NCBI RefSeq assembly: GCF_000150275.1
Contig: NW_002060945.1
Coordinates: 9,378,011 to 9,442,010 of the forward strand
Direction: 5' to 3'
DNA length: 64,000 bases
Source of the DNA: Trichoplax adhaerens
Lineage: Eukaryota; Animalia; Placozoa
In this document: positions 22,442-62,420 of the stretch, in pieces
Layout of the letters: the number at the start of each line of letters is the position of its first letter
Position numbering within the stretch: position 1 is the first letter of the stretch
Notes under the pieces: generated by a model
Told to the model about the DNA's origin: nothing
Databases searched by the model: none
What the model saw: the letters and a program-made list of their open reading frames with translations, nothing else
Program-made: the position numbers and the translations under genes

Positions 22442-24416
22442 ATGGCTTACGGACCAAAGGCAGCCATCGATGACTACTTTGAATACACAAGGTGCGTTCA
22501 ATGGTAACTAAGTTCATTTTAAACAAATTTAAACTAACCGTTTGTAATGAGAATATCTGTTAAAGTAGCCTGATTTCTAAATTTTAATGTTTTATGCCAT
22601 AAAATAGCTATAACTATTAATAGCAGCTAGTCTATTTTTTAACGATATCTAACTCTTTGACCTATCATCATCAATTCTAAATCCAAGTACAAATCCTTTT
22701 AAAATTACATAAACATAAAATTTCAGTTTATCGTTTAAAAAGCTATATACAGTAGTTACTAGGATAAGTCAGCATGAAGCAATTACTTAGAGCGTTTGTA
22801 TCCTTTCTAAGCCAATGGAAGCTCTAAGCAAGTCATTATAACAAGTATAAGAAACAAAGTAAAATTTACAATTTCGATATATTTTAGTCATTGCAAATTG
22901 TTAATGAACTGTCGTTATAAGAGAAAGGCATTAAGCGAAATAACAATATAGACTTAAGCTGTATATACGAATAGATGAACCGTTCCATTAGAAACGAGTT
23001 TCAGAAGTTAATACATTTATGTATCGTTTCTTGTGTCCATTCCACTTCCATAGAATTGTAGGTGATGACGATGGTGGCAAGTTGTTTACACCTCAGGAGT
23101 ACGAGAAATATAAAAAAAGAGTTCTACCTATACGTGCTAAAAATCGGTTATACGTGAGTTGGACTTCCCCTACTGGCATCGATTGTAAATTGATTGGTCC
23201 AGAAACACCATGTTTTTGTACACATAGGTCAGAACAACACTCATCGTTGCTAACATTGGTTGCAATCTATTACTTTTATCATCGTGTTATGCTGTATCCT
23301 TTCCTCCTTCAATTTAGACATAAGGATTGTCAATAAATATTACAGCAGATCCTGAATTAGTTTTGAACTGACGACTATCCAATCTATTCTAGATATAAAC
23401 AACATAAGACCGATTTTGAAGTTATTCCATCTGAACGACCAATTGCGATGCCATGCCGAGCAAAAGGATGTTTGTGTAAATCATATCATTACATTCCCGC
23501 AATGGGCTCACAGCACATAAAGTGTAGCGCTTGCAAGCATCCATCGAATGAACATTCACCTAAATCTCCGTACAAGTGTGCCAGGAGCAACTGTGGTAGC
23601 AAACAATGTCAAGGTAAATAATATCACGGAACAAGTTATGCCGGATGACCAAATTTAGAAATATACTTTAATTAATTAGCCTCCTCTTTATGATGACTTA
23701 AAGCGGATAAATGATATTTATAAATATTATAATTAATCATTACATGCTGCAAAAAGAAAACGACAAGTAAGTTTACGTTAGTACACATCTTTGAAGATCA
23801 GATACTACTTTCAATACTACATTTCAGACCACTAACTATTGTCGGTATTAATATACTATTCCCATTTATAGCCTGATTTTCTGTAGGATATTAGCTTTAC
23901 AGTATTTGGTACCTTTCAATTTAGTACTAGTTACAATAAACGAATAACTTGTCGAGAATCAGCTCAGAGATAAATTTCAATTGTTGATTAATTTAGGATT
24001 TAAAACTTCCTATACATGCTTGTGTGGTGAACTCGCTAATAAACATCAGACAATTATTGAAACCAAAGAGGAAAGAGAAAATCGTGGCCACCCTGTTAGT
24101 AAAGACGACGTTCCGTATATTGCTATGGGAGGTTTAACAGGTAATAGAACTAATATTAGATTAATTTCAGTGGCCAAAACAATTCTCTACTATATTACTA
24201 AAATACATCCTAATATTCCTAGGATTTAGCTCTTTAGCTGAAGGGTATATACGATGCGATCCAAGTGGTGCTGGTCAAATTTCAAAGGAGCAATTAAATC
24301 AACCTATTACTTCAAGCGATCATCCTTTTCTTAGGACTTACGGCATCCCACCTATGAATAAAATAAAAGCTAAATCTGGCAAATCGTCAACTTGTAAACT
24401 TGTCAAAAAACAGTAA
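22442..24416 (+). CDS. FAM221A: FAM221A-like Cys/His-rich protein, 5 exons
   Basis: MAYGPKAAIDDYFEYTR|IVGDDDGGKLFTPQEYEKYKKRVLP...WTSPTGIDCKLIGPETPCFCTHR|YKQHKTD...|...ETKEER...PYIAMGGLT|GFSSLAEGYIRCD matches recalled FAM221A motifs. The exact 3' end is uncertain (stop 24414-24416 if there is no further splice). Confidence 0.88.
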
Positions 24417-25370: not shown

Positions 25371-25915
25371 TTAGGTTATTACGCATTGTTGATCTTCTAA
25401 CGACTCAGCCGTTTTCATATAAGCGATAGTCTGAATTAATTGAACAAATGCAAGTTCAGTTTTAGAGTACGTTGTTGCCGATGTTTCAATATATCGATGT
25501 TGAAATGAACTCGCCAATAATTCACCTTCTTGAAAGGTAATTTGCCGTTTGTAGCTTTTTGCATCATTCTTATTACCAACAATAATACAAGGAAAATCGG
25601 TTCCAGTCACTTGGCTTAAACTTTGATAGTAATTACCAATATCGTCAAATGATTGCCAGTCGTCAACGGAAAATACTAACATTACACCATCAATATCCTG
25701 TAAAATCGATTGGTAGCTAGATAGTGCTGAGTTTGCTGCTAATTTACTAACAATTATCTTTAATTTGATCGAGTACTGACCAAATTTTAGTATCTTTTTA
25801 AATTGACTGGATCTATATGAGCTTCTGTCAGGTGGATAACGTTTTTTACAATACTGACATGCTATTGCAGTCTTACCGACATTTGAATGACCAAACAAGA
25901 CAATCTTAACTGGAT
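25371..25915 (-). other. Ras-superfamily G-domain (degenerate G2/G3) plus CAAX within the giant ORF
   Basis: GxxxxGKT, NKxD and ETSA motifs occur in canonical order and spacing. The effector loop reads YPPDRSSYRSSQF, and the G3 position reads KIIVSKLAAN instead of xIxDTAG. Confidence 0.88.
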
Positions 25916-28900
25916 TTTTAGGTATGCTCGTTTTATGCGAGCTTTTTGATAACGATCTGATCCGATGATTTAAATGCTTTAATTTTATACGAAAAGATTC
26001 ACTTTCACCGCTCGTATTGTCTCCGTCCGGATCACTGTCAGATAGAAGGTTAAAATTAGATTCTAAGTAAACAGATGAACGCTCATCACAGCTATCTGTA
26101 TCTTCATAGTGAGAAAGACGTATATGGGCCTCATCTTGAACGTTTTTAGCATATGCTGAATCTACAGAACTGGTAGCGTGTGTATTTGCGTTAAGGTATT
26201 CGGATTCCTTACAAATTGAAGCAACTTTCTCTTGTTCCTCTATATCATAACGAGAAGAGTGTGCATTCGGATCCTCTCTATCTGAGAGAGTAAATTCTGA
26301 TCCTACGTAAGTTGGGGTTATTTCATTATGGCTCACAACATTCTTGCGAGACGAAAGCTCTTCTGAATCGTCATGGAGAGCAATACCGGTTGACTCTTGG
26401 TTCAGTGGAATGCTTCTATATAGGCAATCTCGATCAATGTTATCTTCTTGCAAAGGAGTATATTCACGTCCAGTGTCCTCTTCACATATTGAGCTAGCTG
26501 TCGATTCTAGACTATTTGATAGATTTACGTGCAGGACAGTTTCAATCAGGGGAATATTATCATTACAGTTAGATGAATGGTGGTTACAATCCATTTCATT
26601 GAGTAATGCCGGAAAAGTAGATTGAGACTGATTTCCTGATTGATAATTCGCGACTGACGGATCCGACAAGGATAAATTCAATATTCCAGGACTCTTTTGA
26701 TCTTCAATCGATAAACTTTCCATGCTATAAAACGTGATTTGGCTTTCATCTGATTGATGGTCGATTTTATTCATAGACTGATGAAGTTCATCCAAAGCTA
26801 CATTGTTTGCACTATAATACAACCGTTTAGCATAAATTTCAGATTTGTCGAAACCTTCAATTTGATTTTGGTACTTTATTGAAATGTTATCCATGCTATA
26901 AAACGTAAGTTTTTCAAGATGCAAGGAACCATTATTATCATCATGATTATATATGATTTCCGTTTCTGAAAAACGGCGTCTCGGCCGAAGTTTATGGGTG
27001 TCACGCGCTTCCATACTTGCAAAACTGGTGTTTGAATAGGACTTTAAATTATCAGCAATCACTTCCTGAATTTCTTCGGACACAATGCTTCCAACTGAAC
27101 TACAATCCAATTGATAGGATTCATCCTTATTACTGAAGCTATCACGAATCTCGTGTAGACTTTCATTGAAGCAGGCATTAGCTGTTAATTCAATTGTATA
27201 GCTCTCACAAATTTCATCTTTAATTTTATTGTCAGTTAGTTTAGATGTTAACTCCGGAATACCACCAGCGTTGCCATCCTTTCCAAATTTTGCTCCATCC
27301 AAATTAGACGTAAACCTTTCACTCTTATCGTCACACGCATTTTGTCTTATCAAACTTTCTGAGGAATCTACTAAGCTATAATCAGGTTCTTGACAAGTTT
27401 TTTCAACTTCCATTTCGACTATGCTAGCCTTTAGCTGACGTTTGATATCTTTCCGAATATCTTCTACAGATTCATGTTTAGTTGAATTATAAAGTAACGT
27501 ACTAATATCGTTCCCAACAATTTTCTCTCCACTGTCTTCTCCAAAAACCTCAGTATTTTCGTAATTATCATCTTCCTTACAGGTTTGATAGCCAATAACA
27601 GCTTCGGCTGTGCTCAAGTGAAACTTACAGTTATCGTCACCGTCATTGCTTTCCTTGATCTTTGCTCTGGACGAGGAAGTTGACAATATGCTATGGCCGT
27701 CATAATCATTATTTCCAACTAATTCAATTTCTTGATTACAATTATCTTCCTCGCTAATCTCCTCTGTAAACTTACCAAGATTTATTATAATATCTTTCGG
27801 TGTCAAGCTATCACTTTCATCTCGTATTTTCTTACCAACTTTCTCTGGGTTTGAATTTGTCAAGCGTGTGAATCTGTCATTCTTATAAATGTCCGTAACT
27901 GTCTCATTATCTGTCAAGTTTACAGATGGTTTGATGTGATCTAAACAAGCATATCCTAATGCACCCTTATCATTATGAATTTGTAAATCTTGTTCTAGCC
28001 TTAATTTATTGCATTTATTCTCGTAACAAATACCTACAAACTTAGAATTCTCCTTCTCTATTCTAGAAAGAATAGTTCGAACAGCATCTACTTGGTCTAT
28101 TCTTAATTGCTTTAACTTTTCCTGATAAGTATTTCGTAAGAATTCCGTTCCTTTTCTAGCTTTGGAATTGAAGCTTTGTAAAATACTCTCTTGTTCTATC
28201 CCTACAGTCTCTAGCTTCTTGCTACAATTATCACCGGCAGCTTCCTTTTCTTTTTCAAGTATTGCGTATAATTTCTGGATTATATTTTCCTGTTCTAACC
28301 TTAATTGACTCAACTCACCTTCATAGAAATGCACAGAAAATTTCCATACTTTTCTAGGTTGATAACTTATATTATTGTTCTTATATTCTTGTTCGATTCC
28401 CAACCGATTTAGGTTTCCACTGCAGTCACTGCCATCGTTTTCTTCTGGAAAGGTAAAATGCAATTTTTCGATGTCATATCTGCATTCTTGGCGAAGCCGG
28501 CTCAATTTATCTCCAGTCCGACTTATCAAAGCCTTCCACTCCTTGCTCGAATTTGATAACAGCGTTTGCAAGATGTGATCTTGCTCAATACATAACTGAT
28601 TTAATCTTTCATCATAATAACTAAGGAAATTCTCTTTCTCCTTTTTAAGCTCATAAAATAAATTCTTAACAATCTCTATTTCTTCTTTTTCAACTACATG
28701 TAGTATCTCTTGATACTGAGATATAATCGTTTCTTTCTCCGATTCGAATTGCTTATACAAGTTATCGTTGCTACGCTCGTATTCCAGTGTCTGCTGATTT
28801 AATACCTCTGCTTGTTGATTAGCCAATGCTTTCTCCCTAGCAATCAATGAGTGAATGCTTTCAATGGTCTCTATATCTCTTTGATGCTGGCTTTGTAGAC

Positions 28901-31900
28901 TTTTTATTTCTTTCATGTACTTATAATCCATCTTTTCCATTTCGTTTTGATGCTGGTATTGGGTATTTTTCAACTCCACTTGATAATCATTTGCATTCTT
29001 TGTCATTAAACTTTCAATTTCTTGATATTGACGATTTAAATCGTGTACGGCGTTATCATAACTCTCTCGTAAATAAGTAATCTGATGCTGAAATTCATCA
29101 TGAATGCTTCGTATTTCTTGTTGATAACAATCCTTAATGGTTTGAATTTCATGTTTATTTTTTGACTGAATTTCCCCAGTTGCTATTAGGTGTCGGTCAC
29201 GGATATCTTGTAATTCCGATTGATGTTCATGCATAAGAGTATTTACGGCATTCGTTGCCTTCAGATATTTATCTTCCAATTCACAAAGCTGGCGCTGATA
29301 AGTTTCAGTTGTATGGGCTATTGTGCTTTGACGTTCATTTATGATATTTATTTCATTCCGGTATTCCATTCTGATATTTTGCAGTTCCATTCCATGCTCA
29401 TTTCGGATTTGTAGGATCTCTTCTTCGTGTAAATTTTGGATATTTATTAACTTCCTATCACATTTTACAACTTCTTGCTCCTTTTCATTGTTAACCTTAT
29501 TACAATTAATAACGGCATCTCGTTCCTTTATATTATAACTTTCACTTGATACTTCCTGTTGATACTGATGATTAGAGCTGATTATTTGCAACTCATCTCC
29601 ATGCCCATCTTCGGTATTTCGCATTGTACATTCATAATTTTCATGATGCTTACTTTGAATGCATTGCAATTCTAACTGGTGTTCATTTTGAATATCCTCT
29701 ATCTTTTGTAGATGACTTGCTTTCATCCGAGCTAAGCTACTACGAAATTCTTGTTTCTCCAGCTCAGATTCATTCGCAATATTTGCTATCTGATAGCTAT
29801 ATTTATCTTTTAAAACTTGCACCTCTATACAATGTTTGCCCTGAATTTTTTGTAGTTCTTCTTGATGTGTATCATCAACACCTATCAGTTCCATCTGATC
29901 GTCATTTCGTACATCTTGCAACTCTTCGGTATGAATAACAGCACAACCAGACCTATTATAATTATCATTATATTCTCCGATTAACTCTTGAATTTTTAAT
30001 TCATAATTTTCAATTATATCGGATGCTTGACGTTGAGATTCATCTCGAATCTGTTGAACCTCTGCCTTTTGTTCTCTTATTATTGATTCAATTTGTAAAT
30101 TATGTTCACGAGATAAGATGTCTATCTTCTGTACTGCCTCATCTCGAACGCGTTTTACATCCTTTTGATGGGCTTCCTCTATAACTGTTAATTTTCTTCG
30201 ATAGTCCTCATCTTTTAATCGAAATTTATTTTGAAGGGATAATACTTCTTTGTCATGAGCTTCCTGTAATTGGCACAATCTTTCATCGAATATTCTCGCC
30301 TGATTGTCAATTTGTAGCTGGTGATTTTCTCTGGTTGTCGCCAATTTACCCTCATAATCTTTTTTTAAATAGTCTGATCGGTCGTCGTATGCCTTCTTCT
30401 GCTCCTCCAGCTGTAATTGATAACCATTGAAATTCATAATTTCTCTTCCCCGAGCTTCCTGTAATTTAATCGAATAACTGCTCAAAGTTGCTTCTGACTC
30501 CTCCAATTGCTTCTGGTATTTACTTTCAACTGCAATTAGCTCTCGAGCATGATCAATATGTATTTGACCGATATTTTCTTCAAAGGCTGTTTTCTGTTCT
30601 TGTAATTGAGTTTTGTGGTTACTTTGACATACGGCCATTTCTTTATCATAAGCTTGACGAGAATGATCTAATTTAATTTTAAATGCCTTCTCTTGCGTAT
30701 CGAATTTTATCTGATATACAGAATGCAAATTTGCTATTTCCTCATTTTGAGTAAGTTGCAACTGATTTAGCTTAGCATTCATTTTATCCTCTAGCTCATC
30801 CATTTTTAATTGGTAAAAACGTTGTGTTTCTACAATTTTTTCGTCTTTAGCTCGAAGTGTTTGACTTAAACCGTCTTCACATAATTTTTTTCGTTCTTTC
30901 AACTGCTGTTGATGATCATCGCGAATATTTTCAATTTCTCTTTCGTGGGATATTCGCAAATTATTTATAATATTATGCAATTCCTTCTCCTGTTCCTGTA
31001 ATTGCACCTTATGAAATCCTTTCAATATCTCCATTTCCTTTATTTGAATTATTTTCAACTTATTTATTTCTTCTTCATAAACATTTTCTTGCATTTTCAT
31101 TTGCATACGATAAACGTCTCGAGCCGTTGCTATGTCCAAAGAATGATTTCGACTTTGATCATTAATTCTTTCTATCAACGCTTCTCGTTGCCATTTTAGC
31201 ATCTTTCGGTGGGTCTTAATTGTTTTAGCTAATTCTTCATCATGACTCCGGTGTTTTTTCTTTAATTTATTTTCATACGTAAACTGCAGTTGCACCAATT
31301 GTAACTGTTGACTATTTTTAGCCGTAGCCATTTCTGCGCTATGTTCTTCCAGTAATCTATCTCGTTTAGTTTGGAAGTTCTTCTCCTGTTCCAGTATCCA
31401 CTCTTGATAACTACGTTTAGCTGTTACCATATCTTCCGCGTGAACATAATCTATATGCTTTAATTTCTCTTCAAAAAATTTTTGTTTTTTCTCTAATTCT
31501 TTTTCATGTCTATCTTTAACAGAAACTATTTTCTTATCATAGTCAGCCTGTAATCGTTTAGATTTTTCATCGGAAACTTTCTTTTCATCGTCTAACAGGA
31601 TTTGATAATCGTCTCGCAGTGCCGTAATTTTTTTGGTATAAACTTCATTAAAGTCTTTAATTTTATCTTCATACATTTTCTCTTGATTATTCAATTGCAG
31701 TTGGTAACTATCAGTAATCATCAACAATTGTTCGTCATAATCTTTCTTGCATTGATTTAAATCATCCTGGAATGCTTTCTTCCATTCTTCTTGAGCTAAA
31801 ATCATGTCATTATCAAAATTTCGTTTTAGGTGCTTCAATGCATCCTCTGTTACTTTATCTTGGTTCTTTAGTTTTACTTCGTAATTTTTTTCGGCTATAA

Positions 31901-34900
31901 CCATTTTCTCCTCGTGCTCCTGTAATGATTGATTCAAACTATAAATTAATTTTTCTTTCTTCTCCAATTCTTTATGATTTTCCTCTTTAAGTGTTGCTAT
32001 TTCTTTCTTATGAACTTGAACAAAGTAATCCGATTTATCTTTAAACACTTCATCCTTCGTTTTAATCTGTACTTCATAATCATTTCTAGCCGTCAATATT
32101 TCTTTATCATGACTTTGACGCAATAAGGTTATAGTATCTTCATTCATCAGCTTTTGCTGCTGCAGTTGCATCTGATAATTATGTGCAAGTGACGCAACTT
32201 CTTCGTCATGAGCTAATTTTAATTGCCCTAAGTTATCTTCAAACATCCTTTCTTCTTTTCTTAACTGTAAATGATACCTGTCCTTTATTTTTACTACCTC
32301 TAAATCATGAATTCGGCGCAAATCTAGTAAGTTTTCTTGATGCTCTTTTATCAGCTTTTCTTTTTCATTCTGATACTGTTGTGCTAATTGTGTATTATGA
32401 TTTTCCATTTGCAATTGTAGAACTGTCATTTGTTTCTTCAAACGTTGTTCAAATTGTGATTCGAGATCTATGATATTATTCTCGTGATGCTGTATCATCT
32501 CTTGTTTGTCTGCCTGAAACTTGCTTTCTTGTTTTTTAATTTGTTCATTACATTTCGCTTTCAAGACCTCTAATTCTACAGCATGGTTATCTTTTAAATG
32601 ACTTAAATTGATTCGCAGTGCTTCTTGCTGACGTTGCACCTCATTCATATAATCAAGACGATTCTGGGTAACTTTATTTTCAATGACAATCAATTCATTC
32701 TTGACTTTTTGAGCAAGGTCATCTATTTGGCGTTTTAATTCTTCTATCTTCAACCTTTGTTGATGGATTGTATTGGATAATGTTTGTTCATGCTGACATT
32801 TTAGTTGATAGTCACTTTTGATCATATCTCTTTCCATAGCTAAGACATCTTTTTCATGTTGATGTTTTTCCTTTAGCTCATTCCATTCCTGTTGCTGTTT
32901 CATTCTTTCATCATTAATATTATTTTCCAGTAATCTGATAGTTTCATTATGCTTATGTTGTAATCGCAGTAATTCATTATCATGCTGTCTCTGGCTCGCT
33001 GCTAAGTTTTCGTTATATTCCTCTATTGCCTTTTGTATCTCAATTTTTTGATCTTTCTTGACAGTATCAAAATGAATGTGCAATTCCTGGACGATTAACT
33101 CTTGCTTCAGTTGTAATTGATGGATCATACTTTTATGTTGATTACGACAGTCTATTAACTTATTTTCACTTTCACTTTTTAAATTTTCGAGCTCTTCTTT
33201 ATGTTGCTCATTTAAATTATTTAATTGTTTGCAATGTGTTAATTTATTATTTTCAAGCTGCTCCTCAAAGCTTTTAACCGTCATATCGTGTTGAGCTTGC
33301 AATTGATAGATAAAATCTTCTTGCTGTTTCTTGTAGGTGTCTATTAAATTTTCTTTTTTATTATCTAATTCGTTAATTTCAATGCTATGCTTTTCTTTAA
33401 GATTTTTTAATTGTAATTGATGTGCTATCTGACACCTTTCCAGATCATCTTCTAACTGTTTGATCGAGTTGTTATGATGTGTTTGTAACTGTTGGATGAC
33501 ATTATCGTATTTCTTTCTGCAAGATTCTAATGCTTTTTCTTGATCATCTAGTTTTACTTTATATTCGTCCTTAACTTCATTTAAGCGTTCAAGGTACATC
33601 AATTTACTGACTTCAATATGATTTTTCATTTCTTCGATAGTGTTATCATGTTCCTGCCGCAGCTGATTGCTAACTTTATCAAGTTGTTCCTTATTTGTAT
33701 CGAGCAACCGTTTCTTTTCATGAATTAAGTTATCAATCTCTCTTTTATGCTCATTCGCGATGATACTAATTTGCTTCTGGTGTATTGCTTGATCAGTATC
33801 AAGCCGATTAATCAACTTTTTAATATCTACGTCATGTTGTACTTTTAGTTCGTTGATAGCATCTAAATATTGCATCTTAATAGTGTCAATCTGTTGCTCT
33901 TTTTCAATAGTTATGCCATCGATCTTTGCTTTCTGTTCTTTCTTTAAGCTATTTAATCGTTCTTGATTAACAAATCTTTCAGTCTCAAGTTTATCAACAA
34001 GTTGCCTAATGGCTAGATCATGCTGAGATTGCATTTGTTGGATATTGCAAGCATGTTGCTGCTTACAATATTGTAATTGCTTTTCATTCTCCAAAATTAC
34101 ATCATTTAGTTCAGCTTTGTATTTCTTTTCCGTATCTTCTCTTAAATTTTGTATAGTTTTAACTTTCTTTACTATTTCATCATACTGCAATTGCTTTTTA
34201 TAGATAATTTTCGTTGACTCCTCTCTACAAGCTTTTACTGCTTGTTCTTTTTCCATAGACAAGTTATCAATCTCACTTTTATGGTCATCCATAATCTGAG
34301 CAAATTTCTGTTGATGTATGACCTGATTCGCTTCCAATTCACGCATGGCATCCTCATGCTTTTTCCTGTGGATATCAACTAGCTTTTCCTTTTCATTAGT
34401 CAAGGTATTCAGTTTACTTTTATAATCGGCTTCTAGCTGATTGAATACACTTTGTTGAGCTAATTTTTCATTTTCAAAATTTTCTTGCAATATTTTCTTA
34501 TCTGAATCATTCTCAGATTGCAATTGCGCCAGCTTGTCTTTATGCTGTTGTTCTAAAGCTACTATTGCTAATGCTTTATTCTGACGCAATTCTGATATTT
34601 TTATCTCAGATTCTTTCTTCAAATTATGGAGTTGATTTTGTAAAGTAGATATAATATCATCACGTTTCTGGATTTCTAGCTTATGCTGACATTGAAGCTG
34701 ATAAATGCTATTATCGTGCTCCTTTTTGGATGTTTCTAGTACAAGTTTCTTTTCCACCAATAACTTATCAAGTCGACGTTTATTCTCATCTTTTAAGCTT
34801 TTAAGTTCATGTTGATGCTTAACCATTTTATCTTCAGTTTTATTTTTAAGACTGTTTATAACTTCATTGTGCTCTAGACGTAATTTGTTCATTCCAGTCT

Positions 34901-37900
34901 CATGCTCATCATGTAAGGTGGCCATTATTTGTGTCTTTTCTGTATGATATTTTTCCTCCATCTTTTTCATTTGACATTGTAATGTTGATAGATCATTCTC
35001 GAGTTTCTCTACTGCCATATGATGCTGAATTTCGATTTGAGCAAAGTCATCATTATACTGTTTCTTTAACCCTTCTAAAAGGGTATCTTTCTCATTGATC
35101 AAATTATCAATTTGAATTTTACGTTCACTTTCGATATCATCAAATTTTCGTTGGTAATCTAACTCCTTCTTCTTAAATTCATCTTGAAGTAATTTTAGTG
35201 TAATGTTATGTTCTTTTTGTAATTTGTCTGTTTTATTAACGTATAGTTTATCTAATGTGATTACTTTTTGTTCACTTTCTTCATGTAATTGTTTTAGCCT
35301 CATTTGGTACTCCTCCTCTACGCTTTTGAGCTGATTTTCGAGATTCTTGATTTCTACATCATGTTGTAATTGTAGTTGATGTATATTAACTTCATAGTAT
35401 TTTTGAGAGTCTTTCAATTGCACTTCCTTTTTTTTAGCTAGACAATCTAGCTGTATTTCATGCTCACTTTTCATAGTGTCGATTTTACGCTGATATAATA
35501 GATCGGCATTTTCTAATTTCTCCCTGAGCTCATTTATAACTATAGTATTTTGACTTTGTAACTTATCAATTGTGTTCTTATAGTCCTTTTCTAAATTTGT
35601 TACCATCCGAATATTTTCATTATAGGTATTTTTAATTTCTATTTCATGCGCAACCTTAATGTTGCCAAGTTGATCTTGTAATGCCGTCATGATCCGTTCA
35701 TTTTCATCAAGTAATTGTTTTTTTTCCATTATATGTGATTCTTTCAAACTATTAAGTTGATTTTGTAACATGGTTAGCATCTCTTTTTTTTCATCATTTG
35801 CCAGCTTTATTTCTGTTCGATGTAATTCTTTTAAGCTATCAATTTCATCTTGCAATATTGTTGATATTTGCTCTTTTTCAGCAAACGTTTGTTTCTTCTC
35901 TACTTCATAAGAATCTTTCAAATTATCAAATTGATTCTGCAAGGTTATCGATATCTGTTCATTTTCTTCCTGTAACCGTTTTACTTCCCTTGCATGCAAT
36001 CCCTTCAAATTATTAATTTCATCTTGCTTTGCGGTTAACATTTGCTTCGTGTGATCACGTGTTTGTTTCACCTCTAGTTCACATTCTTCTTTTAGCTTCT
36101 CAAGTTGATCTTGTAAAGCTGATACTTTGCACTGTTTCTCGATATACAACTCCTTCAGTTTTATTTCATGTACTTGTTTCATGTCATTTATCCGACTCTG
36201 AAGTCTTGACAAATTTTCTTTCATTACAACAATATCACTTTGATGCTGACTATTTAATCTCTTGACCTCCTCAATGAAATTCAAACGATTACATTCAACT
36301 TTATCCATCCATTCCTTCAGAATTTGGTCATGTCCTACTTCTTGATCATGAATTTTATGATTATAATCATCTCGACAAGCTAACAATTTATTTTCTTTTT
36401 CTTTAATCAATTGTTCAATATTTGCGTTATGTTTTGCTTTTATATCTAATAATTCTTGCTGATATTGTAATCGGCATATTTGCAATTGATCTTGAAGGTT
36501 TAAATTATGTCTTTCCTCTAGATCATCAAACTTTACTTGCCACTGTAATTTTAAACTATTAATATCTTCTTCAAGCTGATTTTGCACGCTAGTTAATTTC
36601 GTTTGGCAATCTTTAACTAATTTGCTTCTTATATCTTCTTTTTCTTTCTGCCATGACCATTGCATCTTACTTATTTCTTCTTTATTTTGATTTTGTAAAT
36701 TTGTAATTCTAATCTTGCAATCTATTAACATCTGTCTGACCACATTTTCCTTCTCTTCAAGCAATGTTGATTTTAAGTTGTTTATATTGTCGTTGTATTT
36801 ATTTTGTAAGTTATTAATTTTAGCTTCATGCTCTTCTCTTATTTCTATCTGGATCGATTCTTTCTCTTTCTGCCATGATGCTTTCATCTCGTTTAGCTCT
36901 AATTCATGACGGTTTTGAGTATCGTAGAGTTTAACTTGATATTCATTATGTAAGTTTTCCTTTAATAATTCTTTCTCTTCTTCACATAGTCTATTTATCC
37001 TCTTAATTTCGTCTTCATGATGGTTTCTTGTGTTTACTAATTTGATTTTGTAATCTTGTATATCTCGCTCTATTACTTTCTTCTCTTCAAGTAATGTTGA
37101 TTTTAAATTGTACATATTGTCGTTGTATTTATTTTGTAAGTTATTAATTTTAGCTTCATGCTCTTCTCTTATTTCTATCTGGATCGATTCTTTCTCTTTC
37201 TGCCATGATGCTTTCATCTCGTTTAGCTCTAATTCATGACGGTTTTGAGTATCGCAGAGTTTAACTTGATATTCATTATGTAAGTTTTCTTTTAATAACT
37301 CTTTCTCTTCTTCACATAGTCTATTTATCCTCTTAATTTCGTCTTCATGATGGTTTCTTGTGTTTGCTAGTTTAATTTTGCAATCTTCTTGTATATCTCG
37401 CTCTATTACTTTTTTCTCTTCAAGTAATGTTGATTTTAAATTGTACATATTGTCGTTGTATTTATTTTGCAAGTTATTAATTTTAGCTTTATACTCTTCT
37501 CTTATTTTGTTTTGGATTGATTCTCGTTCTTCTTGCCATATCATATTTATTCTTTTAATTTCCTCTTCATAATAGCTTTTCATATTTGCAAGTTTAACCT
37601 TGCAATCTTCCTGCATATTTCGCTCAATTACTTTTTTCTCTTCCTGCAATGTCGATTTTAAACTGTTTATGCTGTTGTTGTATTCACTTTCTAAATTATC
37701 GATTTTAACCTTATGCTCTCTTCTCATTTTATTACGGATCGATTCTTGCTCTTCTTGCCGTAGCATATTTATTCTCTTAATTTCGTCTCGATGATGGGTT
37801 TTTATATTAGCAAGTCTAATTTTGTAATCTTCCTGCATATTTCGTTCTATTATTTCCTTCTCTTCCTGACACAATATTTTAATCTGAGCAATTTCCTTCT

Positions 37901-40103
37901 CATGATATTGGCGCATTTGATCGGTATTCACTTTAAACTCTTCTACTTTCATTTCTAGCCATTTTTTATCTTCTTGATATGATGTATTCATTTTTATTAT
38001 CTCCTTCTCATAGTGATCGCGTAAAGCCTTTACCTTCAATTGACAATCCTCTAGTAAGGCATCTTTTAACATTTTTTCAGCTTCTACTCTCTCCTCTTGC
38101 CATGCCCTTTTCATCTTACATATGTCATCTTTATGCTGACAACGAATTGTATCGACGTTATTTTGGTAATTCTCTAATAGTGTCTCTTTCAAAGTTTTCT
38201 CCGTAATATCCTTCTTTGTTTGCCAAGATACATTTATTTCATTAATCAATTTCTTATATTGAGTATGGATATTACCAATGTTAACTTGATGATCTTTTAA
38301 CATATCTATTTTTAGTCTTTCTTTTTCGTCTTGCCATTGCATTTTTTGCTGATTTATTTCTTTACAATAATCATTTTGATTGCTATCAATTTTGCGTTGA
38401 TAATCTTCATGAATTTGCTTTGCTGTTGTATTGAATGATTCTTGGTTCGACTTTATTTTATGTTGAAGTTCAGATATTGCTTGCTGATGTTGAGATCGAA
38501 TCGATTCTAGATTTTTACTGAAACTCAGTTCTAGTTGAAGAATTTTATCTTGACATGAGTTCTCCTTTAATTGTACATCTTTTTCATGCTGACATCGTAA
38601 TGCTATGTTCTGGTCTTGTAATTCTTGAATCTCCAATTGATGCACTTTGATATATCGTTTCTTATCATTTTCCATGTTTAGTAATTTCATATTGAAATCC
38701 TGTTCCATTTGCTCAGCATTCATTTTCAAATCTTTCAATTGTTTTTGATGATTTTCTTTTACAGTTAAAAGCTCAGATTGATATTTATTTTGAATTTTTT
38801 CACTTTTATCCATAGCATCTTGTAGCTGATTTTTCAATGTATACGTTAATTGCTGAGTTTCTCGTAAAAGTTGCTGATAATTAACATTTTCATGCTTGCA
38901 TTGATTAAGTTCATTCGTTAGCTCGGCTATATCATTATTCAATTGAATTGATTTACCATTTAATTCTTGCTTTAAATCTTCAACAATACCTTGATATTGC
39001 TTTTTTATTCGGTTATTTTCAGTATTAGCATTTGTTAATAATAGTTGTTGACTATCTAAGTCACATTTCATTTGATCAAGCAGGCTGGATAGTTTTAACA
39101 TTTTTAAGTCGTATTCAACTTTACTTTCGTTCAGTTCATCCTTTAGCCTGGCAATAGTAGTATCATATTGGCTTTTCATTTGATTTGTAGTAGTATTACT
39201 TTCAGCCAATTCTCGCTGATGATCATTTTCTGCTTGTTCTTTCTCGCTTAATACTTGCTGCAACTGATTAGACAATATTGTGACTTTCTTACTCTGATTC
39301 AGTCTTTCACTTTCAATCTGCTGCTGTAATTCTCCAACATTGATTTCATATTGAATTTTCAATTGACTACGATCATTGATAGCCGTTGCTAGTTCTTGTT
39401 GATGACGTTCATCAGCTTGAGTTTTGGCATGGCTCATTTCATCAAGCTGGCTAACCAAGTTGGCTATTTTATGGTTATATTCAGCTTTTTGATCATTGCA
39501 GTTTTGCCTTAAATTTTGAATTTCATTTTCATACTGATTCTTTAATCGATGAGAAATCCTTATGGCTTCATCTAGCTGCTGTCTAGATTGGCACTGTGAA
39601 TTATTCTTATCTTCCTCTAACTGATTTATTTGCTGATTTAATTTTGCGATTTGATGCTGATATTGAGTAGTTTCATTCTTGATTTGATGCTTTAATTCTT
39701 TGACGTTATTTTCATATTGATCCATCAAGCTCTTATTTTGTTGTTGGTATTCATTTTGAAAATCAACAACGCATTCATTTAAGCTATCAATTTGATCTTG
39801 ATATTGTTGACTAGTTTGCTGAATGATTGGATCAAGGTGTTTCAATTCTTCGACAATATTTCCAAGACATTCATCTTGAGCTTGATGCATGGATGTTGGT
39901 GTTTCATCTCCACCTCGAGGACAAACAATCATTTGAGTTAAATTCTCCACTCCTATTTGCAGATAACGTAAATTTTTTTCCATCACTTGACTCATTTCCA
40001 GGATATTATTGGTAATTGGTTGATGTTGCTGATTTCCAGTGGCCAATGGGATATCTAAACTTGATGTTAAACTATTCATTCTTTCAGTTTGGTTGGCATC
40101 CAT
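25371..40103 (-). CDS. Giant 4910-aa coiled-coil protein with C-terminal atypical Ras-like GTPase domain and CAAX box; single uninterrupted exon
   Basis: 14.7-kb open frame in AT-rich DNA. E/K/Q/L-rich helical repeats span aa ~80-4040 and an acidic linker spans ~4040-4730. Then VKIVLFGHSNVGKT (G1), DGVMLVFSVDDWQSF, CIIVGNKND (G4), YIETSAT (G5) and terminal CVIT*. A splice-acceptor-like TTTTTAATATAG lies 6 nt before the ATG, so an upstream exon is possible. Confidence 0.9.
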   Translation of the reverse strand: MDANQTERMNSLTSSLDIPLATGNQQHQPITNNILEMSQVMEKNLRYLQIGVENLTQMIVCPRGGDETPTSMHQAQDECLGNIVEELKHLDPIIQQTSQQYQDQIDSLNECVVDFQNEYQQQNKSLMDQYENNVKELKHQIKNETTQYQHQIAKLNQQINQLEEDKNNSQCQSRQQLDEAIRISHRLKNQYENEIQNLRQNCNDQKAEYNHKIANLVSQLDEMSHAKTQADERHQQELATAINDRSQLKIQYEINVGELQQQIESERLNQSKKVTILSNQLQQVLSEKEQAENDHQRELAESNTTTNQMKSQYDTTIARLKDELNESKVEYDLKMLKLSSLLDQMKCDLDSQQLLLTNANTENNRIKKQYQGIVEDLKQELNGKSIQLNNDIAELTNELNQCKHENVNYQQLLRETQQLTYTLKNQLQDAMDKSEKIQNKYQSELLTVKENHQKQLKDLKMNAEQMEQDFNMKLLNMENDKKRYIKVHQLEIQELQDQNIALRCQHEKDVQLKENSCQDKILQLELSFSKNLESIRSQHQQAISELQHKIKSNQESFNTTAKQIHEDYQRKIDSNQNDYCKEINQQKMQWQDEKERLKIDMLKDHQVNIGNIHTQYKKLINEINVSWQTKKDITEKTLKETLLENYQNNVDTIRCQHKDDICKMKRAWQEERVEAEKMLKDALLEDCQLKVKALRDHYEKEIIKMNTSYQEDKKWLEMKVEEFKVNTDQMRQYHEKEIAQIKILCQEEKEIIERNMQEDYKIRLANIKTHHRDEIKRINMLRQEEQESIRNKMRREHKVKIDNLESEYNNSINSLKSTLQEEKKVIERNMQEDCKVKLANMKSYYEEEIKRINMIWQEERESIQNKIREEYKAKINNLQNKYNDNMYNLKSTLLEEKKVIERDIQEDCKIKLANTRNHHEDEIKRINRLCEEEKELLKENLHNEYQVKLCDTQNRHELELNEMKASWQKEKESIQIEIREEHEAKINNLQNKYNDNMYNLKSTLLEEKKVIERDIQDYKIKLVNTRNHHEDEIKRINRLCEEEKELLKENLHNEYQVKLYDTQNRHELELNEMKASWQKEKESIQIEIREEHEAKINNLQNKYNDNINNLKSTLLEEKENVVRQMLIDCKIRITNLQNQNKEEISKMQWSWQKEKEDIRSKLVKDCQTKLTSVQNQLEEDINSLKLQWQVKFDDLEERHNLNLQDQLQICRLQYQQELLDIKAKHNANIEQLIKEKENKLLACRDDYNHKIHDQEVGHDQILKEWMDKVECNRLNFIEEVKRLNSQHQSDIVVMKENLSRLQSRINDMKQVHEIKLKELYIEKQCKVSALQDQLEKLKEECELEVKQTRDHTKQMLTAKQDEINNLKGLHAREVKRLQEENEQISITLQNQFDNLKDSYEVEKKQTFAEKEQISTILQDEIDSLKELHRTEIKLANDEKKEMLTMLQNQLNSLKESHIMEKKQLLDENERIMTALQDQLGNIKVAHEIEIKNTYNENIRMVTNLEKDYKNTIDKLQSQNTIVINELREKLENADLLYQRKIDTMKSEHEIQLDCLAKKKEVQLKDSQKYYEVNIHQLQLQHDVEIKNLENQLKSVEEEYQMRLKQLHEESEQKVITLDKLYVNKTDKLQKEHNITLKLLQDEFKKKELDYQRKFDDIESERKIQIDNLINEKDTLLEGLKKQYNDDFAQIEIQHHMAVEKLENDLSTLQCQMKKMEEKYHTEKTQIMATLHDEHETGMNKLRLEHNEVINSLKNKTEDKMVKHQHELKSLKDENKRRLDKLLVEKKLVLETSKKEHDNSIYQLQCQHKLEIQKRDDIISTLQNQLHNLKKESEIKISELRQNKALAIVALEQQHKDKLAQLQSENDSDKKILQENFENEKLAQQSVFNQLEADYKSKLNTLTNEKEKLVDIHRKKHEDAMRELEANQVIHQQKFAQIMDDHKSEIDNLSMEKEQAVKACREESTKIIYKKQLQYDEIVKKVKTIQNLREDTEKKYKAELNDVILENEKQLQYCKQQHACNIQQMQSQHDLAIRQLVDKLETERFVNQERLNSLKKEQKAKIDGITIEKEQQIDTIKMQYLDAINELKVQHDVDIKKLINRLDTDQAIHQKQISIIANEHKREIDNLIHEKKRLLDTNKEQLDKVSNQLRQEHDNTIEEMKNHIEVSKLMYLERLNEVKDEYKVKLDDQEKALESCRKKYDNVIQQLQTHHNNSIKQLEDDLERCQIAHQLQLKNLKEKHSIEINELDNKKENLIDTYKKQQEDFIYQLQAQHDMTVKSFEEQLENNKLTHCKQLNNLNEQHKEELENLKSESENKLIDCRNQHKSMIHQLQLKQELIVQELHIHFDTVKKDQKIEIQKAIEEYNENLAASQRQHDNELLRLQHKHNETIRLLENNINDERMKQQQEWNELKEKHQHEKDVLAMERDMIKSDYQLKCQHEQTLSNTIHQQRLKIEELKRQIDDLAQKVKNELIVIENKVTQNRLDYMNEVQRQQEALRINLSHLKDNHAVELEVLKAKCNEQIKKQESKFQADKQEMIQHHENNIIDLESQFEQRLKKQMTVLQLQMENHNTQLAQQYQNEKEKLIKEHQENLLDLRRIHDLEVVKIKDRYHLQLRKEERMFEDNLGQLKLAHDEEVASLAHNYQMQLQQQKLMNEDTITLLRQSHDKEILTARNDYEVQIKTKDEVFKDKSDYFVQVHKKEIATLKEENHKELEKKEKLIYSLNQSLQEHEEKMVIAEKNYEVKLKNQDKVTEDALKHLKRNFDNDMILAQEEWKKAFQDDLNQCKKDYDEQLLMITDSYQLQLNNQEKMYEDKIKDFNEVYTKKITALRDDYQILLDDEKKVSDEKSKRLQADYDKKIVSVKDRHEKELEKKQKFFEEKLKHIDYVHAEDMVTAKRSYQEWILEQEKNFQTKRDRLLEEHSAEMATAKNSQQLQLVQLQFTYENKLKKKHRSHDEELAKTIKTHRKMLKWQREALIERINDQSRNHSLDIATARDVYRMQMKMQENVYEEEINKLKIIQIKEMEILKGFHKVQLQEQEKELHNIINNLRISHEREIENIRDDHQQQLKERKKLCEDGLSQTLRAKDEKIVETQRFYQLKMDELEDKMNAKLNQLQLTQNEEIANLHSVYQIKFDTQEKAFKIKLDHSRQAYDKEMAVCQSNHKTQLQEQKTAFEENIGQIHIDHARELIAVESKYQKQLEESEATLSSYSIKLQEARGREIMNFNGYQLQLEEQKKAYDDRSDYLKKDYEGKLATTRENHQLQIDNQARIFDERLCQLQEAHDKEVLSLQNKFRLKDEDYRRKLTVIEEAHQKDVKRVRDEAVQKIDILSREHNLQIESIIREQKAEVQQIRDESQRQASDIIENYELKIQELIGEYNDNYNRSGCAVIHTEELQDVRNDDQMELIGVDDTHQEELQKIQGKHCIEVQVLKDKYSYQIANIANESELEKQEFRSSLARMKASHLQKIEDIQNEHQLELQCIQSKHHENYECTMRNTEDGHGDELQIISSNHQYQQEVSSESYNIKERDAVINCNKVNNEKEQEVVKCDRKLINIQNLHEEEILQIRNEHGMELQNIRMEYRNEINIINERQSTIAHTTETYQRQLCELEDKYLKATNAVNTLMHEHQSELQDIRDRHLIATGEIQSKNKHEIQTIKDCYQQEIRSIHDEFQHQITYLRESYDNAVHDLNRQYQEIESLMTKNANDYQVELKNTQYQHQNEMEKMDYKYMKEIKSLQSQHQRDIETIESIHSLIAREKALANQQAEVLNQQTLEYERSNDNLYKQFESEKETIISQYQEILHVVEKEEIEIVKNLFYELKKEKENFLSYYDERLNQLCIEQDHILQTLLSNSSKEWKALISRTGDKLSRLRQECRYDIEKLHFTFPEENDGSDCSGNLNRLGIEQEYKNNNISYQPRKVWKFSVHFYEGELSQLRLEQENIIQKLYAILEKEKEAAGDNCSKKLETVGIEQESILQSFNSKARKGTEFLRNTYQEKLKQLRIDQVDAVRTILSRIEKENSKFVGICYENKCNKLRLEQDLQIHNDKGALGYACLDHIKPSVNLTDNETVTDIYKNDRFTRLTNSNPEKVGKKIRDESDSLTPKDIIINLGKFTEEISEEDNCNQEIELVGNNDYDGHSILSTSSSRAKIKESNDGDDNCKFHLSTAEAVIGYQTCKEDDNYENTEVFGEDSGEKIVGNDISTLLYNSTKHESVEDIRKDIKRQLKASIVEMEVEKTCQEPDYSLVDSSESLIRQNACDDKSERFTSNLDGAKFGKDGNAGGIPELTSKLTDNKIKDEICESYTIELTANACFNESLHEIRDSFSNKDESYQLDCSSVGSIVSEEIQEVIADNLKSYSNTSFASMEARDTHKLRPRRRFSETEIIYNHDDNNGSLHLEKLTFYSMDNISIKYQNQIEGFDKSEIYAKRLYYSANNVALDELHQSMNKIDHQSDESQITFYSMESLSIEDQKSPGILNLSLSDPSVANYQSGNQSQSTFPALLNEMDCNHHSSNCNDNIPLIETVLHVNLSNSLESTASSICEEDTGREYTPLQEDNIDRDCLYRSIPLNQESTGIALHDDSEELSSRKNVVSHNEITPTYVGSEFTLSDREDPNAHSSRYDIEEQEKVASICKESEYLNANTHATSSVDSAYAKNVQDEAHIRLSHYEDTDSCDERSSVYLESNFNLLSDSDPDGDNTSGESESFRIKLKHLNHRIRSLSKSSHKTSIPKNPVKIVLFGHSNVGKTAIACQYCKKRYPPDRSSYRSSQFKKILKFGQYSIKLKIIVSKLAANSALSSYQSILQDIDGVMLVFSVDDWQSFDDIGNYYQSLSQVTGTDFPCIIVGNKNDAKSYKRQITFQEGELLASSFQHRYIETSATTYSKTELAFVQLIQTIAYMKTAESLEDQQCVIT
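36740..37500 (-). repeat. Recent in-frame tandem duplication, 330/333-bp period, ~2.3 copies, inside giant ORF
   Basis: TTCTCTTCAAG anchor at 36751, 37081 and 37414; near-identical peptide NKYNDNMYNLKSTLLEEKKVIERDIQ...HELELNEMKASWQKEKESIQIEIREEHEAK. Confidence 0.92.
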
Positions 40104-42674: not shown

Positions 42675-44240
42675 TCTCTTTGCAAAACATATATCCAGGC
42701 AAAGAGCAAAGTGAAAAAGTAGTCCTTCATTTTTTGCTTATGGTAGCGACAAAGACATTCTTCATAGTCTCTTTCAAAGCACAATCTACTCAAGTAGATA
42801 GCAAAGTGAAAAATGGCTCTTAATTTTAATCCATTCTATGCTTAAGGTAGCGACAGACATCCTTCATAGTCTCTTCACAAAACTCTTGCCAGAGTAGAGA
42901 GCAAAATGAACAAATAGCCTTTCATTTTTACCCATTAACTTTGCTCATGATAGCGACAAAGACATTCTTCATAGTCTCTTTCAAAGCACAATCTACTCAA
43001 GTAGATAGCAAAGTGAAAAATGGCTCTTAATTTTAATCCATTCTATGCTCAAGGTAGCGACAGACATCCTTCATAGTCTCTTCGCAAAACTCTTGCCAGA
43101 GTAGAGAGCAAAATGAACAAATAGCCTTTCATTTTTACCCATTAACTTTGCTCATGATAGCGACAAAGACATTCTTCATAGTCTCTTTCAAAGCACAACC
43201 TACTCTAAGTAGATAGCAAAGTGAAAAATGGCTCTTGATTTTAATCCATTCTATGTTCATGGTAGCGACAGACATCCTTCATAGTCTCTTCGCAAAACTC
43301 TTGTCAGAGTAGAGAGCGAAATGAACAAATAGCCTGCCATTTTTATCCATTAACTTTGCTCATGATAGCGACAAAGACATCCTTCACAGACTCTTCACAA
43401 AACTCTTGTCCAGAGTAAAGAGCAAAATGAAGAAATAGGCTTTCATTTTAATCAATTTTTTGCCTTACTTCATAGTCTCTTTGCAAAACTCCTGTCTAGA
43501 GTAGAGAGCAAACTGAAGAAATGGCCTTCCATTTTTATCCATTAACTTTGCTCATGACAGCGACAACGATATCCTTCACAGTCTCTTCACAAAACTCTTG
43601 TCCAGAGTAAAGAGCAAAATGAAGAAATAGGCTTTCATTTTAATCAATTTTTTGCCTTACTTCATAGTCTCTTTGTGAAACTCTTGTCCAGAGTAGAGAG
43701 CAAACGGAAGAACTAGTCTTTCATTTTTATCAATTTTTGCCTTGCCTTCCTTCAAAGTCTCTTTGCAACAACTCCTGTCCAGAGTAGAGAGTAAAATGAA
43801 GAAATAGCCTTTCTTCATTGTCTCATTGTAAAACTCTTGTCCAGAGTAGAGAGTAAAGTGAAGAAATAGCCTTTCATTTTTATCAATTTTTGCCTTACTA
43901 TTCTTCAAAGTCTCTTTGCAAAAACTCCTGTCCAGAGTAGAGAGTAAATGAAGAAATAGCCTTTCATTTTTTGCTTGTGATAGCGATAGGCATTCTTCAT
44001 AGTCTCTTTATAAAACTCTTGTCCAGAGTAGAGAACAAAATGAAGAAATAGCCTTTCATTTTTGCATTCCCTTCCTTCATAGCCTCTTTGCAAAACTCAT
44101 GTCTAGAGTAGAGAGCAACTGAAGAAATAGCCTTTCGTTTTTTAACTCTTTGCTCATGGTAACGACAAAGATATTCTTCATAGTCTCTTTCAAAACACGA
44201 CCTACGTACATTCTGAATAGAGAGCAAAGTTTTGAAATAA
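42675..44240. repeat. Tandem satellite, ~90-105-bp monomers with a 207-bp dimeric higher-order unit
   Basis: GACATTCTTCATAGTCTCTTTCAAAGCACAA at 42754, 42961 and 43168 (207-bp period). The monomer core CATAGTCTCT..CAAAACTCTTGTCCAGAGTAGAGAGCAAAATGAAGAAATAGCCTTTCATTTT repeats with variants to ~44240. Confidence 0.92.
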
Positions 44241-44882
44241 CTCTTCAGTATTTTTTACTCATAGTTGTGGTAAAAGACATTGTTGATCATCTCAATGACT
44301 TCATGGTCTCTTCAGAAAGAAATGGCCACTTACTTTTACTGCTATTCTTTGCCTGACTGTCACAACAGTGTTTTAAATAAATTAATTCATCCAGTACTAC
44401 ATTTCTAGACATGAAAGAAGACTCATTTTTAATCGAGAATAAGCTCAGTGAAGATGGTAAAGTAACTCCATGGCCCGTCATTTTGGATAACAGTTCTTTG
44501 CTAGTTCGTTTTGCCTTTTCAGAACCAGGCCTTTGAGCAAAGCGTTGAAGTCTTTAAAAATAAAGCTTGTATACGACTCGTTGATTTTGCACCTCTTGTG
44601 CTATAATGGCAATTTTTCACACTACAACGGTAGACTTCTCAAGCAAGAGTATTTATTCTGCATTAACGTTAGACACTATATATTTTATTTTCACGATAGC
44701 AATAATTAACTAATCAACTGATGTAGCACTCAGCTTCGTCAACAACTAGTGACAAAATAATCAATTTTTCCGCTAAGTGTAATGAACTTTCTCAAGCGTT
44801 ATGGATTTTCTATCATTCTTTGCTTCCAATAACAAGCGCCTAAAGTGAGTCAACAATTGAAGATAATTTTTGCACTACGGTA

Positions 44883-45430
44883 GTGGACTTTCTCAAGCAC
44901 TGTGCATCTTTTCCAATTCTTTCCTAACCCCTAGAATTAGAATTAGTCAACAATTTCATGGCAATTTTTCACTACACACTACCAGTGGTGGACTTTCTCA
45001 AGCACTGTGCATCTTTTCCAATTCTTTCCTAACCCTTAGAATTGGAATTAGTCAACAATTTCATGGCAATTTTTCACTACACACTACCAGTGGTGGACTT
45101 TCTCAAGCACTGTGCATCTTTTCCAATTCTTTCCTAACCCCTAGAATTGGAATTAGTCAACAATTTTATGGCAATTTTTTCACTACACACTACCAGTAGT
45201 GGACTTTCTCAAGCACTGTGCATCTTTTCCAATTCTTTCCTAACCCCTAGAATTGGAATTAGTCAACAATTTTATGGCAATTTTTTCACTACACACTACC
45301 AGTAGTGGACTTTCTTAAGCACTGTGCATCTTTTCCAATTCTTTCCTAACCCCTAGAATTAGAATTAGTCAACAATTTTATGGCAATTTTTTTACTACAC
45401 ACTACCAGTAGTGAACTTTCTCAAGCTTGT
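44883..45430. repeat. 105-106-bp tandem repeat, ~5 near-identical copies with degenerate flanking copies (~44600-46100)
   Basis: GGACTTTCTYAAGCACTGTGCATCTTTTCC at 44885, 44990, 45095, 45201 and 45307; diverged copy at 45413. Confidence 0.95.
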
Positions 45431-61819: not shown

Positions 61820-61994
61820 ATTGGTTCATCGATGTCGATTGCAAAGTCAATGGAGTAGAACTGGAGCAAGCCGCTTTAACCAACAATAGCACTTCAGTCA
61901 GCATTGGCTACGTCCTCTCACTGTAGCACGTACAGTATAGTGTACAGTACATGGGATCCGATTTCGTCACACAGTCCACGTCACACTTTTGCAG

Positions 61995-62420
61995 TATTGT
62001 ACTGTACAGTACTGTACGTTCTCTTATCTCCACTGTGACCATGGAGATACGGTACACTGTAGCACTGGACTGTACACTGTACAGTACACTGTAGGGGCAG
62101 AACCTGGAAGCGTAACACTGTACTGTACAGTATGTACAGTACTGTACAGTACTGTACGTTCTCTTATCTCCACTGTGACCATGGAGATACGGTACACTGT
62201 AGCACTGGACTGTACACTGTACACTGTACAGTGTAGGTGTACACTGTAGGGGCAGAACCTGGAAGCGTAACACTGTACAGTACTGTACAGTACTGTACTG
62301 TACGTTCTCTTATCTCCACTGTGACCATGGAGATACGGTACACTGTAGCACTGGACTGTACACTGTACACTGTAGGGCAGAACCTGGAAGCTTAACACTG
62401 TAATGTAGCTACTGTACAGT
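61995..62420. repeat. 140-146-bp tandem repeat (3 copies) rich in CTGTACAG palindromes, just upstream of ORMDL
   Basis: GTTCTCTTATCTCCACTGTGACCATGGAGATACGG at 62018, 62158 and 62304; GGCAGAACCTGGAAGC occurs three times. Confidence 0.93.

Follow-up and report, generated by a model that had tools for sequence, protein, structure and literature searches.

A Ras-like domain with erased switch motifs, best explained as a pseudoGTPase, at the end of a giant rod protein of Trichoplax adhaerens

The locus and its reading frame

We have analyzed a window of 64,000 nucleotides from Trichoplax adhaerens (contig NW_002060945.1), the minus strand of which carries a gene for a giant protein composed of a long helical rod, a Ser/Asp-rich tail and a Ras-family G domain that closes with a CaaX box. 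The coordinates of these elements, and of other features in the window, are collected in Table 1.

Table 1. Features of the window, with coordinates in the window and residue numbers in the giant protein
Feature	Position	Strand	Basis or remark
Giant rod-Ras protein gene	25371..40103	-	Single ORF, 4,910 codons + TAA stop
Helical rod, E/K/Q/L-rich, residues 93-3885	28449..39827	-	Composition
Ser/Asp-rich tail, predicted non-helical, residues 3886-4721	25941..28448	-	Composition
Twin motif TFYSM[DE]x[IL]SI, residues 4400 and 4457 (57 apart)	~26700-26910	-	In the Ser-rich tail
Basic stretch KHLNHRIRSLSKSSHK	25920-25979	-	Closes the tail, directly ahead of the G domain
Ras-family G domain, PF00071, residues 4733-4893	25425..25907	-	Pfam, AlphaFold2, Foldseek
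G1/P-loop GHSNVGKT	25869..25892	-	Alignment; GxxxxGKT intact
Switch I YPPDRSSYRSSQF	25800..25838	-	No Thr; Ras T35 position is Tyr
G3/start of switch II, VSKLAA in place of DTAGQE	25734..25751	-	Asp57, Gly60 and Gln61 all changed
G4 NKND	25563..25574	-	Alignment; NKxD guanine-specificity motif intact
G5 ETSAT	25473..25487	-	Alignment; ETSA intact, usual Lys replaced by Thr
CaaX box CVIT	25374..25385 (stop from 25371)	-	Putative farnesylation site; TAA directly after
FAM221 gene (PF14753), three exons	23019-24229	+	Convergent with the giant gene
Tandem ORF debris, e.g. GLSQALCIFSNSFLTPRIGISQQFHGNF repeats	43657-45305	Both	Upstream of the giant gene
GC-richer segment (0.44)	61908-62877		Overlapping low-complexity ORFs

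With the base composition of the window, a stop codon is expected about every 13 codons in a random frame, the chance of 181 open codons in such a frame is ~6e-7, and that of 4,910 open codons is ~1e-170. A likely polypyrimidine-AG splice acceptor, tttttaatatag, is located 6 bases upstream of the ATG of this frame, and because of that position we regard the ATG as a plausible start that follows an intron in the 5'-UTR. The coding sequence itself is a 14.7-kb exon without introns, which is unusual since the neighboring genes carry them. Between the last exon of the nearby FAM221 gene and the stop codon of the giant gene there are ~1.1 kb. On the other side of the giant gene, the intergenic repeats look like a satellite or repeat array. 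The GC-richer segment farther along the window repeats strings of the YSVQCTVQCYS type.

The rod and the tail

Composition divides the protein sharply. The rod, which extends over ~3,800 residues, has no proline at all and almost no glycine, and Pro and Gly together make up at most 0.02 of each of its 300-residue blocks. If it formed one continuous coiled coil, we estimate that its length would be several hundred nm. Near-identical internal repeat blocks are present in the rod at about residues 830-1130. The tail of ~835 residues has scattered prolines and is probably flexible. When the full length of 4,910 residues was scanned with Pfam, no domain was placed in either the rod or the tail, and the 800 residues that precede the G domain, when compared with the Trichoplax genome, matched only themselves, with no paralogue. 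The twin motif in the Ser-rich tail may be a linear docking motif.

The G domain

The Ras assignment is a strong one. The PF00071 match has an E value of 5.2e-27 and a score of 94.9 bits, where the cut-off is 21.6, and it covers profile positions 1-160 of 162; besides Ras, only Roc passed E 0.01 in the scan of the entire protein. The domain matches 584 PDB sequences, the best at ~1e-15 and 61 bits, with RhebL1, R-Ras, R-Ras2, Rit1, M-Ras and K-Ras at the top. Structure prediction, which had been suggested together with the original prediction of a pseudo-GTPase at this site, returned a canonical Ras-type G domain by AlphaFold2 (pLDDT 91.7, pTM 0.88), from an input alignment with 79 small GTPases (alignment A1) that would yield a Ras fold whatever the switch residues were. 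Since that input consists of ordinary GTPases, the model speaks for compatibility with the fold and for the register of the sequence on it, and is silent on nucleotide binding. The modeled topology is beta1-alpha1-beta2-beta3-alpha2-beta4-alpha3-beta5-alpha4-beta6-alpha5, as in canonical members, and the nearest structures found with Foldseek were R-Ras, H-Ras, K-Ras, RIT1 and Rap1 (target-normalised TM 0.85-0.91). We consider that the best explanation of the C-terminal ~170 residues, as judged from sequence comparison and the modeled fold, is that they form a true G domain of Ras-subfamily-like type, now turned pseudoGTPase.

In Ras, Thr35 serves both to hold the Mg2+ ion, along with Asp57, and to sense the gamma-phosphate, along with Gly60, and Gln61 places the water molecule. 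The roles of the G motifs have been restated in a study of dynein light intermediate chain (PMC4359372). Set against a canonical switch GTPase, the Trichoplax domain has G1, G4 and G5 and lacks both the Thr of G2 and the DxxG of G3 with its Gln. The 3 retained motifs, GHSNVGKT, NKND and ETSAT, which the original prediction had described as intact, all lie in the frame of the 4,910-codon ORF. Within the P-loop, the positions of Ras G12 and G13 are occupied by Ser and Asn, respectively. The aromatic residue that stacks on guanine is also present, as Tyr in place of Ras F28.

The register of the lost motifs was read from the HMMER alignment to RhebL1 and from the secondary structure of the AlphaFold2 model, and the two gave the same offsets. 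By both, VSKLAA falls in the DTAGQE register, as had been claimed from the sequence, with Val at the position of D57, Ser at T58, Lys at A59, Leu at G60 and Ala at Q61; between beta3 and alpha2, there is neither an Asp nor a Gly, and a Gln61 equivalent is missing. A displaced G3 had been named as an observation that would count against this interpretation, and none is found after beta3 in either the model or the sequence. The only DxxG strings in the domain, DIDG and DDIG, are both located away from the G3 site: DIDG occupies domain positions 82-85, equivalent to Ras 74-77, where alpha2 gives way to the start of beta4, and DDIG (domain positions 99-102) sits in alpha3.

The loss of the G2 Thr, also claimed originally, holds with a small doubt. 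A Tyr occupies the T35 position and YPPDRSSYRSSQF contains no Thr, but Ser residues are found at -2, -1, +2 and +3 relative to that position (SSYRSS), and switch I also holds an Asp. Because 4 Ser residues adjoin the Thr position, G2 has been lost less completely than G3, and a Ser beside the Tyr could partly stand in for Thr35. Remnants of the Ras effector loop can be recognized in this segment, and which of them lines up depends on the register chosen: in the one-residue-gap register of the original prediction, S-Y-R corresponds to Ras S39-Y40-R41, and the alternative is that the Tyr/Pro at the start corresponds to Y32/P34.

We also compared the domain with A1 column by column. It matches the alignment in 25 of the 36 columns with at least 70% conservation. 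With the start Met set aside, 24/29 non-switch columns were matched versus 1/6 switch columns, the latter being T35, D57, T58, A59, G60 and E62 (Fisher p = 0.004). Mismatches cluster at T35, D57, T58, G60 and E62, and of the 5 non-switch mismatches, 2 are conservative (Phe to Tyr and Val to Ile). This concentration of misses in the switch columns argues that the erasure of G2 and G3 was selective and not part of a uniform decay.

The CaaX end

The last 4 residues place a Cys in a column that holds Cys in 97% of the aligned GTPases of A1. A screen of CXXX sequences for yeast FTase (bioRxiv 10.1101/2023.02.06.527295) found Ile at a2 to be favorable; at the X position, no residues were excluded other than K, P and R and, when the Ras reporter was used, W. 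From its sequence, CVIT is likely to be farnesylated; a literature search on the string 'CVIT' itself returned nothing. In the AlphaFold2 model, alpha5 ends 2 residues short of the CaaX Cys and leaves a hypervariable linker of nearly nil, so that the G domain, if the model is correct here, would sit directly on the membrane or target that receives the lipid.

Relatives of the domain

We searched for relatives at several scales. A word search that used the entire protein and took its scores from the Ras region gave no relative among candidates of 2,700-8,600 aa; a search with the last 665 aa gave none among candidates of 366-1,164 aa; and a search with the domain only, among candidates of 115-365 aa, gave ordinary GTPases alone, at 33% identity or less. 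HMMER comparison with 1.84 billion representatives yielded 9,484 matches to ordinary, multi-domain and orphan Ras and Rab proteins, at about 37% identity at most, and the self match was missing from these as well. An exact look-up of the 4,910-aa product showed it not to be on record, and a scan of JGI metagenomes gave no relative. Since the searched sets may omit Trichoplax and its near kin, these blanks are no proof of a unique gene and carry little information on other placozoans.

In the Trichoplax assembly itself (105.6 Mb in 1,414 pieces), the nearest G domains belong to Rab9 (27% identity) and to a Ral/DiRas-like gene (24%), and none exceeds 31%. The degree of divergence can be gauged from the best database scores, which are 256 bits for Trichoplax Rab9 (to human Rab9B) versus 61 bits for the Ras domain (to PDB sequences). 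In a FastTree phylogeny of the alignment, the terminal branch of the domain is the fourth longest of 80 and has no clear sister. Rab-type motifs are lacking, and the CaaX box carries a single Cys. As judged from alignment and tree, the domain is a fast-evolved orphan that is Ras-subfamily in appearance. Many orphan Ras-like proteins among the database matches are also without T35, G60 or both; almost all of them retain Asp57, and among such proteins the further loss of Asp57 is, by these alignments, the rarer state.

Comparison with known systems

The domain shares with members of the Ras subfamily (R-Ras, H/K-Ras, RhebL1, RIT1 and Rap1) its fold, the order of its elements, the G1, G4 and G5 motifs and a single-Cys CaaX box. 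It differs from them in being only 24-27% identical, in lacking Thr35, Asp57, Gly60, Gln61 and Gly12/13, in closing a polypeptide of 4,700 residues, and in having a minimal linker before the CaaX box.

In the probable working of the domain, the closest known system appears to be the dynein light intermediate chain LIC1, by analogy with published descriptions of its motif pattern. Metazoan LIC1, including the human protein, has G motifs and lacks DxxG in its switch 2 loop; it prefers GDP, has been judged to lack a switch function and loses stability when the P-loop or G4 is mutated, and its nucleotide has been proposed as a source of structural stability (PMC4359372). However, LIC has insertions, is unprenylated and binds the dynein heavy chain. 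We do not place the Trichoplax protein in the LIC family, since only Ras and Roc passed in the Pfam scan and the likeness is one of motif pattern and probable mechanism only.

Rnd proteins are farnesylated, and both they and RhoH keep the Asp and Gly of DxxG as well as the switch I Thr. They belong to class ii, being nucleotide-bound, hydrolysis-dead and constitutive, with a degraded switch II region (PMC5593906, PMC11733253), but differ from the present protein in being small, free-standing members of the Rho family. Among the domain word-search matches were GEM-like proteins of Mytilus at ~30% identity, one of which has 'VVDNEE'. Proteins of the RGK group retain the G3 Asp (DxWE). This group (Gem, Rad, Rem1/2) belongs to the Ras subfamily and has non-canonical G2 and G3 motifs and no nucleotide switch (PMC11733253, bioRxiv 10.1101/2022.06.21.496996). 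RGK proteins differ from the Trichoplax protein in that they have no CaaX box and bind calcium-channel beta subunits and calmodulin through N- and C-terminal extensions; membership in the group is rejected, there being no G3 Asp here and the protein ending in CVIT.

With regard to overall architecture, the large Rabs offer a parallel in outline. They are roughly 700-1,000 residues long, and the rod described here is ~4-5 times longer. In Rab44, Rab45/RASEF and Rab46/CRACR2A, a coiled coil is followed by a C-terminal, lipid-modified GTPase domain (PMC8303950, PMC7645795). These proteins differ from ours in their N-terminal EF-hands, in their canonical, switch-competent Rab domains and in their Rab-type Cys motifs; the Pfam scan found no EF-hand in the giant protein, its best matches are of the Ras subfamily and its CaaX box has a single Cys, and it is not assigned to the large Rabs. 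Long coiled coils that are held at membranes or kinetochores through a C-terminal CaaX box or other anchor are found in CENP-E, CENP-F, lamins, Spindly and golgins. None of these is known to have a G domain adjoining the CaaX box, and no sequence relation to the farnesylated coiled-coil giants or to the golgin tethers was detected.

A proposed role and its alternatives

With Thr35, Asp57, Gly60 and Gln61 replaced, neither the loaded-spring switch nor hydrolysis of the normal kind should be available to the domain, which probably serves as a permanent end-piece anchored by lipid. On present evidence, which consists of motif retention and of the analogy with LIC1, we lean toward the reading that it is a nucleotide-holding, non-switching, prenylated piece by which the giant rod is fixed to, or docked on, a membrane. 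Guanine nucleotide, probably GDP or a weakly Mg2+-dependent GTP, would be held as a fixed structural cofactor; the domain would neither hydrolyze GTP nor act as a loaded spring; and, together with the farnesylated C-terminus, it would form a constitutive head for membrane attachment or docking of the ~3,800-residue rod, to which the flexible tail of ~835 residues would join it. From the retained Lys and Thr of the P-loop, the stacking aromatic, NKxD and ETSA, and from the known systems that keep them, we infer that nucleotide is bound, and the prenylation and anchoring role are suggested by the CaaX box. A class ii pseudoGTPase is one that binds nucleotide without catalysis (PMC5593906 Table 2). 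The degraded catalytic and switch residues of that class are found here, with substitutions at T35, D57, G60, Q61, G12 and G13, and with nucleotide binding predicted from motifs and analogy the domain would fit class ii.

The double loss of Thr35 and Asp57 may have lowered nucleotide affinity until the domain became nucleotide-free. It would then be a class i pseudoGTPase, acting purely as a protein-interaction and prenyl-anchor module, with G1, G4 and G5 either structural or left over from a recent loss. We regard this as unlikely. Both side chains that coordinate Mg2+ are indeed missing, the fungal LIC, which is without the G3 Asp, has a closed and empty pocket (PMC4359372), and p190RhoGAP pG1/pG2 and CENP-M provide precedents (PMC5593906). 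Yet the known class i examples are also without the P-loop Lys, the NKxD motif or both, the fungal LIC having replaced its P-loop Lys (PMC4359372), whereas the Trichoplax domain has kept GxxxxGKT, NKxD, ETSA and the stacking aromatic with its switch motifs wiped out, a pattern that would be hard to explain in the absence of selection for nucleotide contact. That the domain is, on the contrary, an active and regulated GTPase of a non-canonical kind, in which a Ser replaces Thr35 and the Lys at A59 or a partner protein supplies the charge or catalytic groups, seems to us quite unlikely. The 4 Ser residues of SSYRSS and the Asp in switch I would suit such a mechanism, as would the absence of T35 or G60 from many orphan Ras-like proteins and the history of the RGK group, which diverges at several G motifs and was first classed as active (PMC5593906 Table 2). 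But the beta3-alpha2 segment has no Asp, no Gly and no Gln61 equivalent, nearly all atypical relatives retain Asp57, and later work detected no hydrolysis in Gem or Rad either (bioRxiv 10.1101/2022.06.21.496996).

The divergence of the domain raises another alternative, namely that it is a decaying relic or a lineage-specific fusion without function, or that this end lies outside the mature protein. It is an orphan, with at most ~37% identity to 1.8 billion representatives and at most 31% to anything in its own genome, and its long terminal branch (fourth of 80) and its 61 bits as compared with 256 for Rab9 are what a relic might give. Against this, 181 codons have stayed open (~6e-7 by chance) with the stop exactly after the CaaX box, the core and nucleotide-contact columns have been retained selectively, and the failure to find orthologues is uninformative because the searched sets may omit the organism's own genome and its near kin; we hold this alternative to be quite unlikely as well. 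Errors of sequencing or assembly, or a hidden intron, that mask a normal switch I and DTAGQE are barely credible. Compensating frameshift errors had been raised at the outset as a possible cause of the altered motifs; both of the other frames of 25371-26010 are interrupted by many stops and contain neither a DxxG nor a PT, which excludes a compensating frameshift, and an intron is excluded by the alignment to Ras, which needs only single-residue indels.

Returning to the nucleotide-holding membrane end-piece, we note that a bolder form of it can be stated, which we consider rather doubtful. In this form, the protein would be an undescribed giant membrane tether whose farnesylated, Ras-derived end is locked on a nucleotide without the usual Mg2+ ligands and has been kept by selection as an anchor in placozoans, and not as a switch, with the Lys at the position of Ala59 possibly replacing the metal. 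If this were true, it would be the first Ras-subfamily domain shown to bind nucleotide after the joint loss of Thr35, Asp57 and Gly60.

PseudoGTPases are a young and thinly populated class, of which further members are expected, and how one works without canonical switching has been called an open question (PMC11733253). The kind of protein is thus already known. What is new is the combination of a Ras-subfamily origin, the retention of G1, G4 and G5 only, a CaaX box and a rod and tail of 4,700 residues, for which we found no published description. The domain is in effect a natural experiment on the use to which a G domain is put once switching is gone. Should it bind nucleotide without the T35 and D57 ligands, the pattern of LIC1 would be known from the Ras family itself as well, and from a domain anchored to a membrane; should it prove to be drifting and unexpressed, it would be a curiosity only. 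The protein is also the largest fusion of a rod and a GTPase that we found, and it may point to a structure of placozoan cells, cytoskeletal or tethering, that has gone unrecognized.

Other atypical Ras-like sequences

Atypical Ras domains seem to be common and unstudied. Several unnamed orphans among the sequences compared (P0049, P0074, P0133, P0158, P0167 and P0100) are without the switch I Thr, the G3 Gly or both, and have kept Asp57; in P0100, moreover, switch I contains 'YPPD' and the G3 site reads 'LDMAPDE'. The Trichoplax genome contains a further divergent Ras-family gene (L003, G000:C1413:9492327-9492797), which apparently has a single exon and among PDB sequences comes closest to RalB and Di-Ras2, at only ~1e-32.
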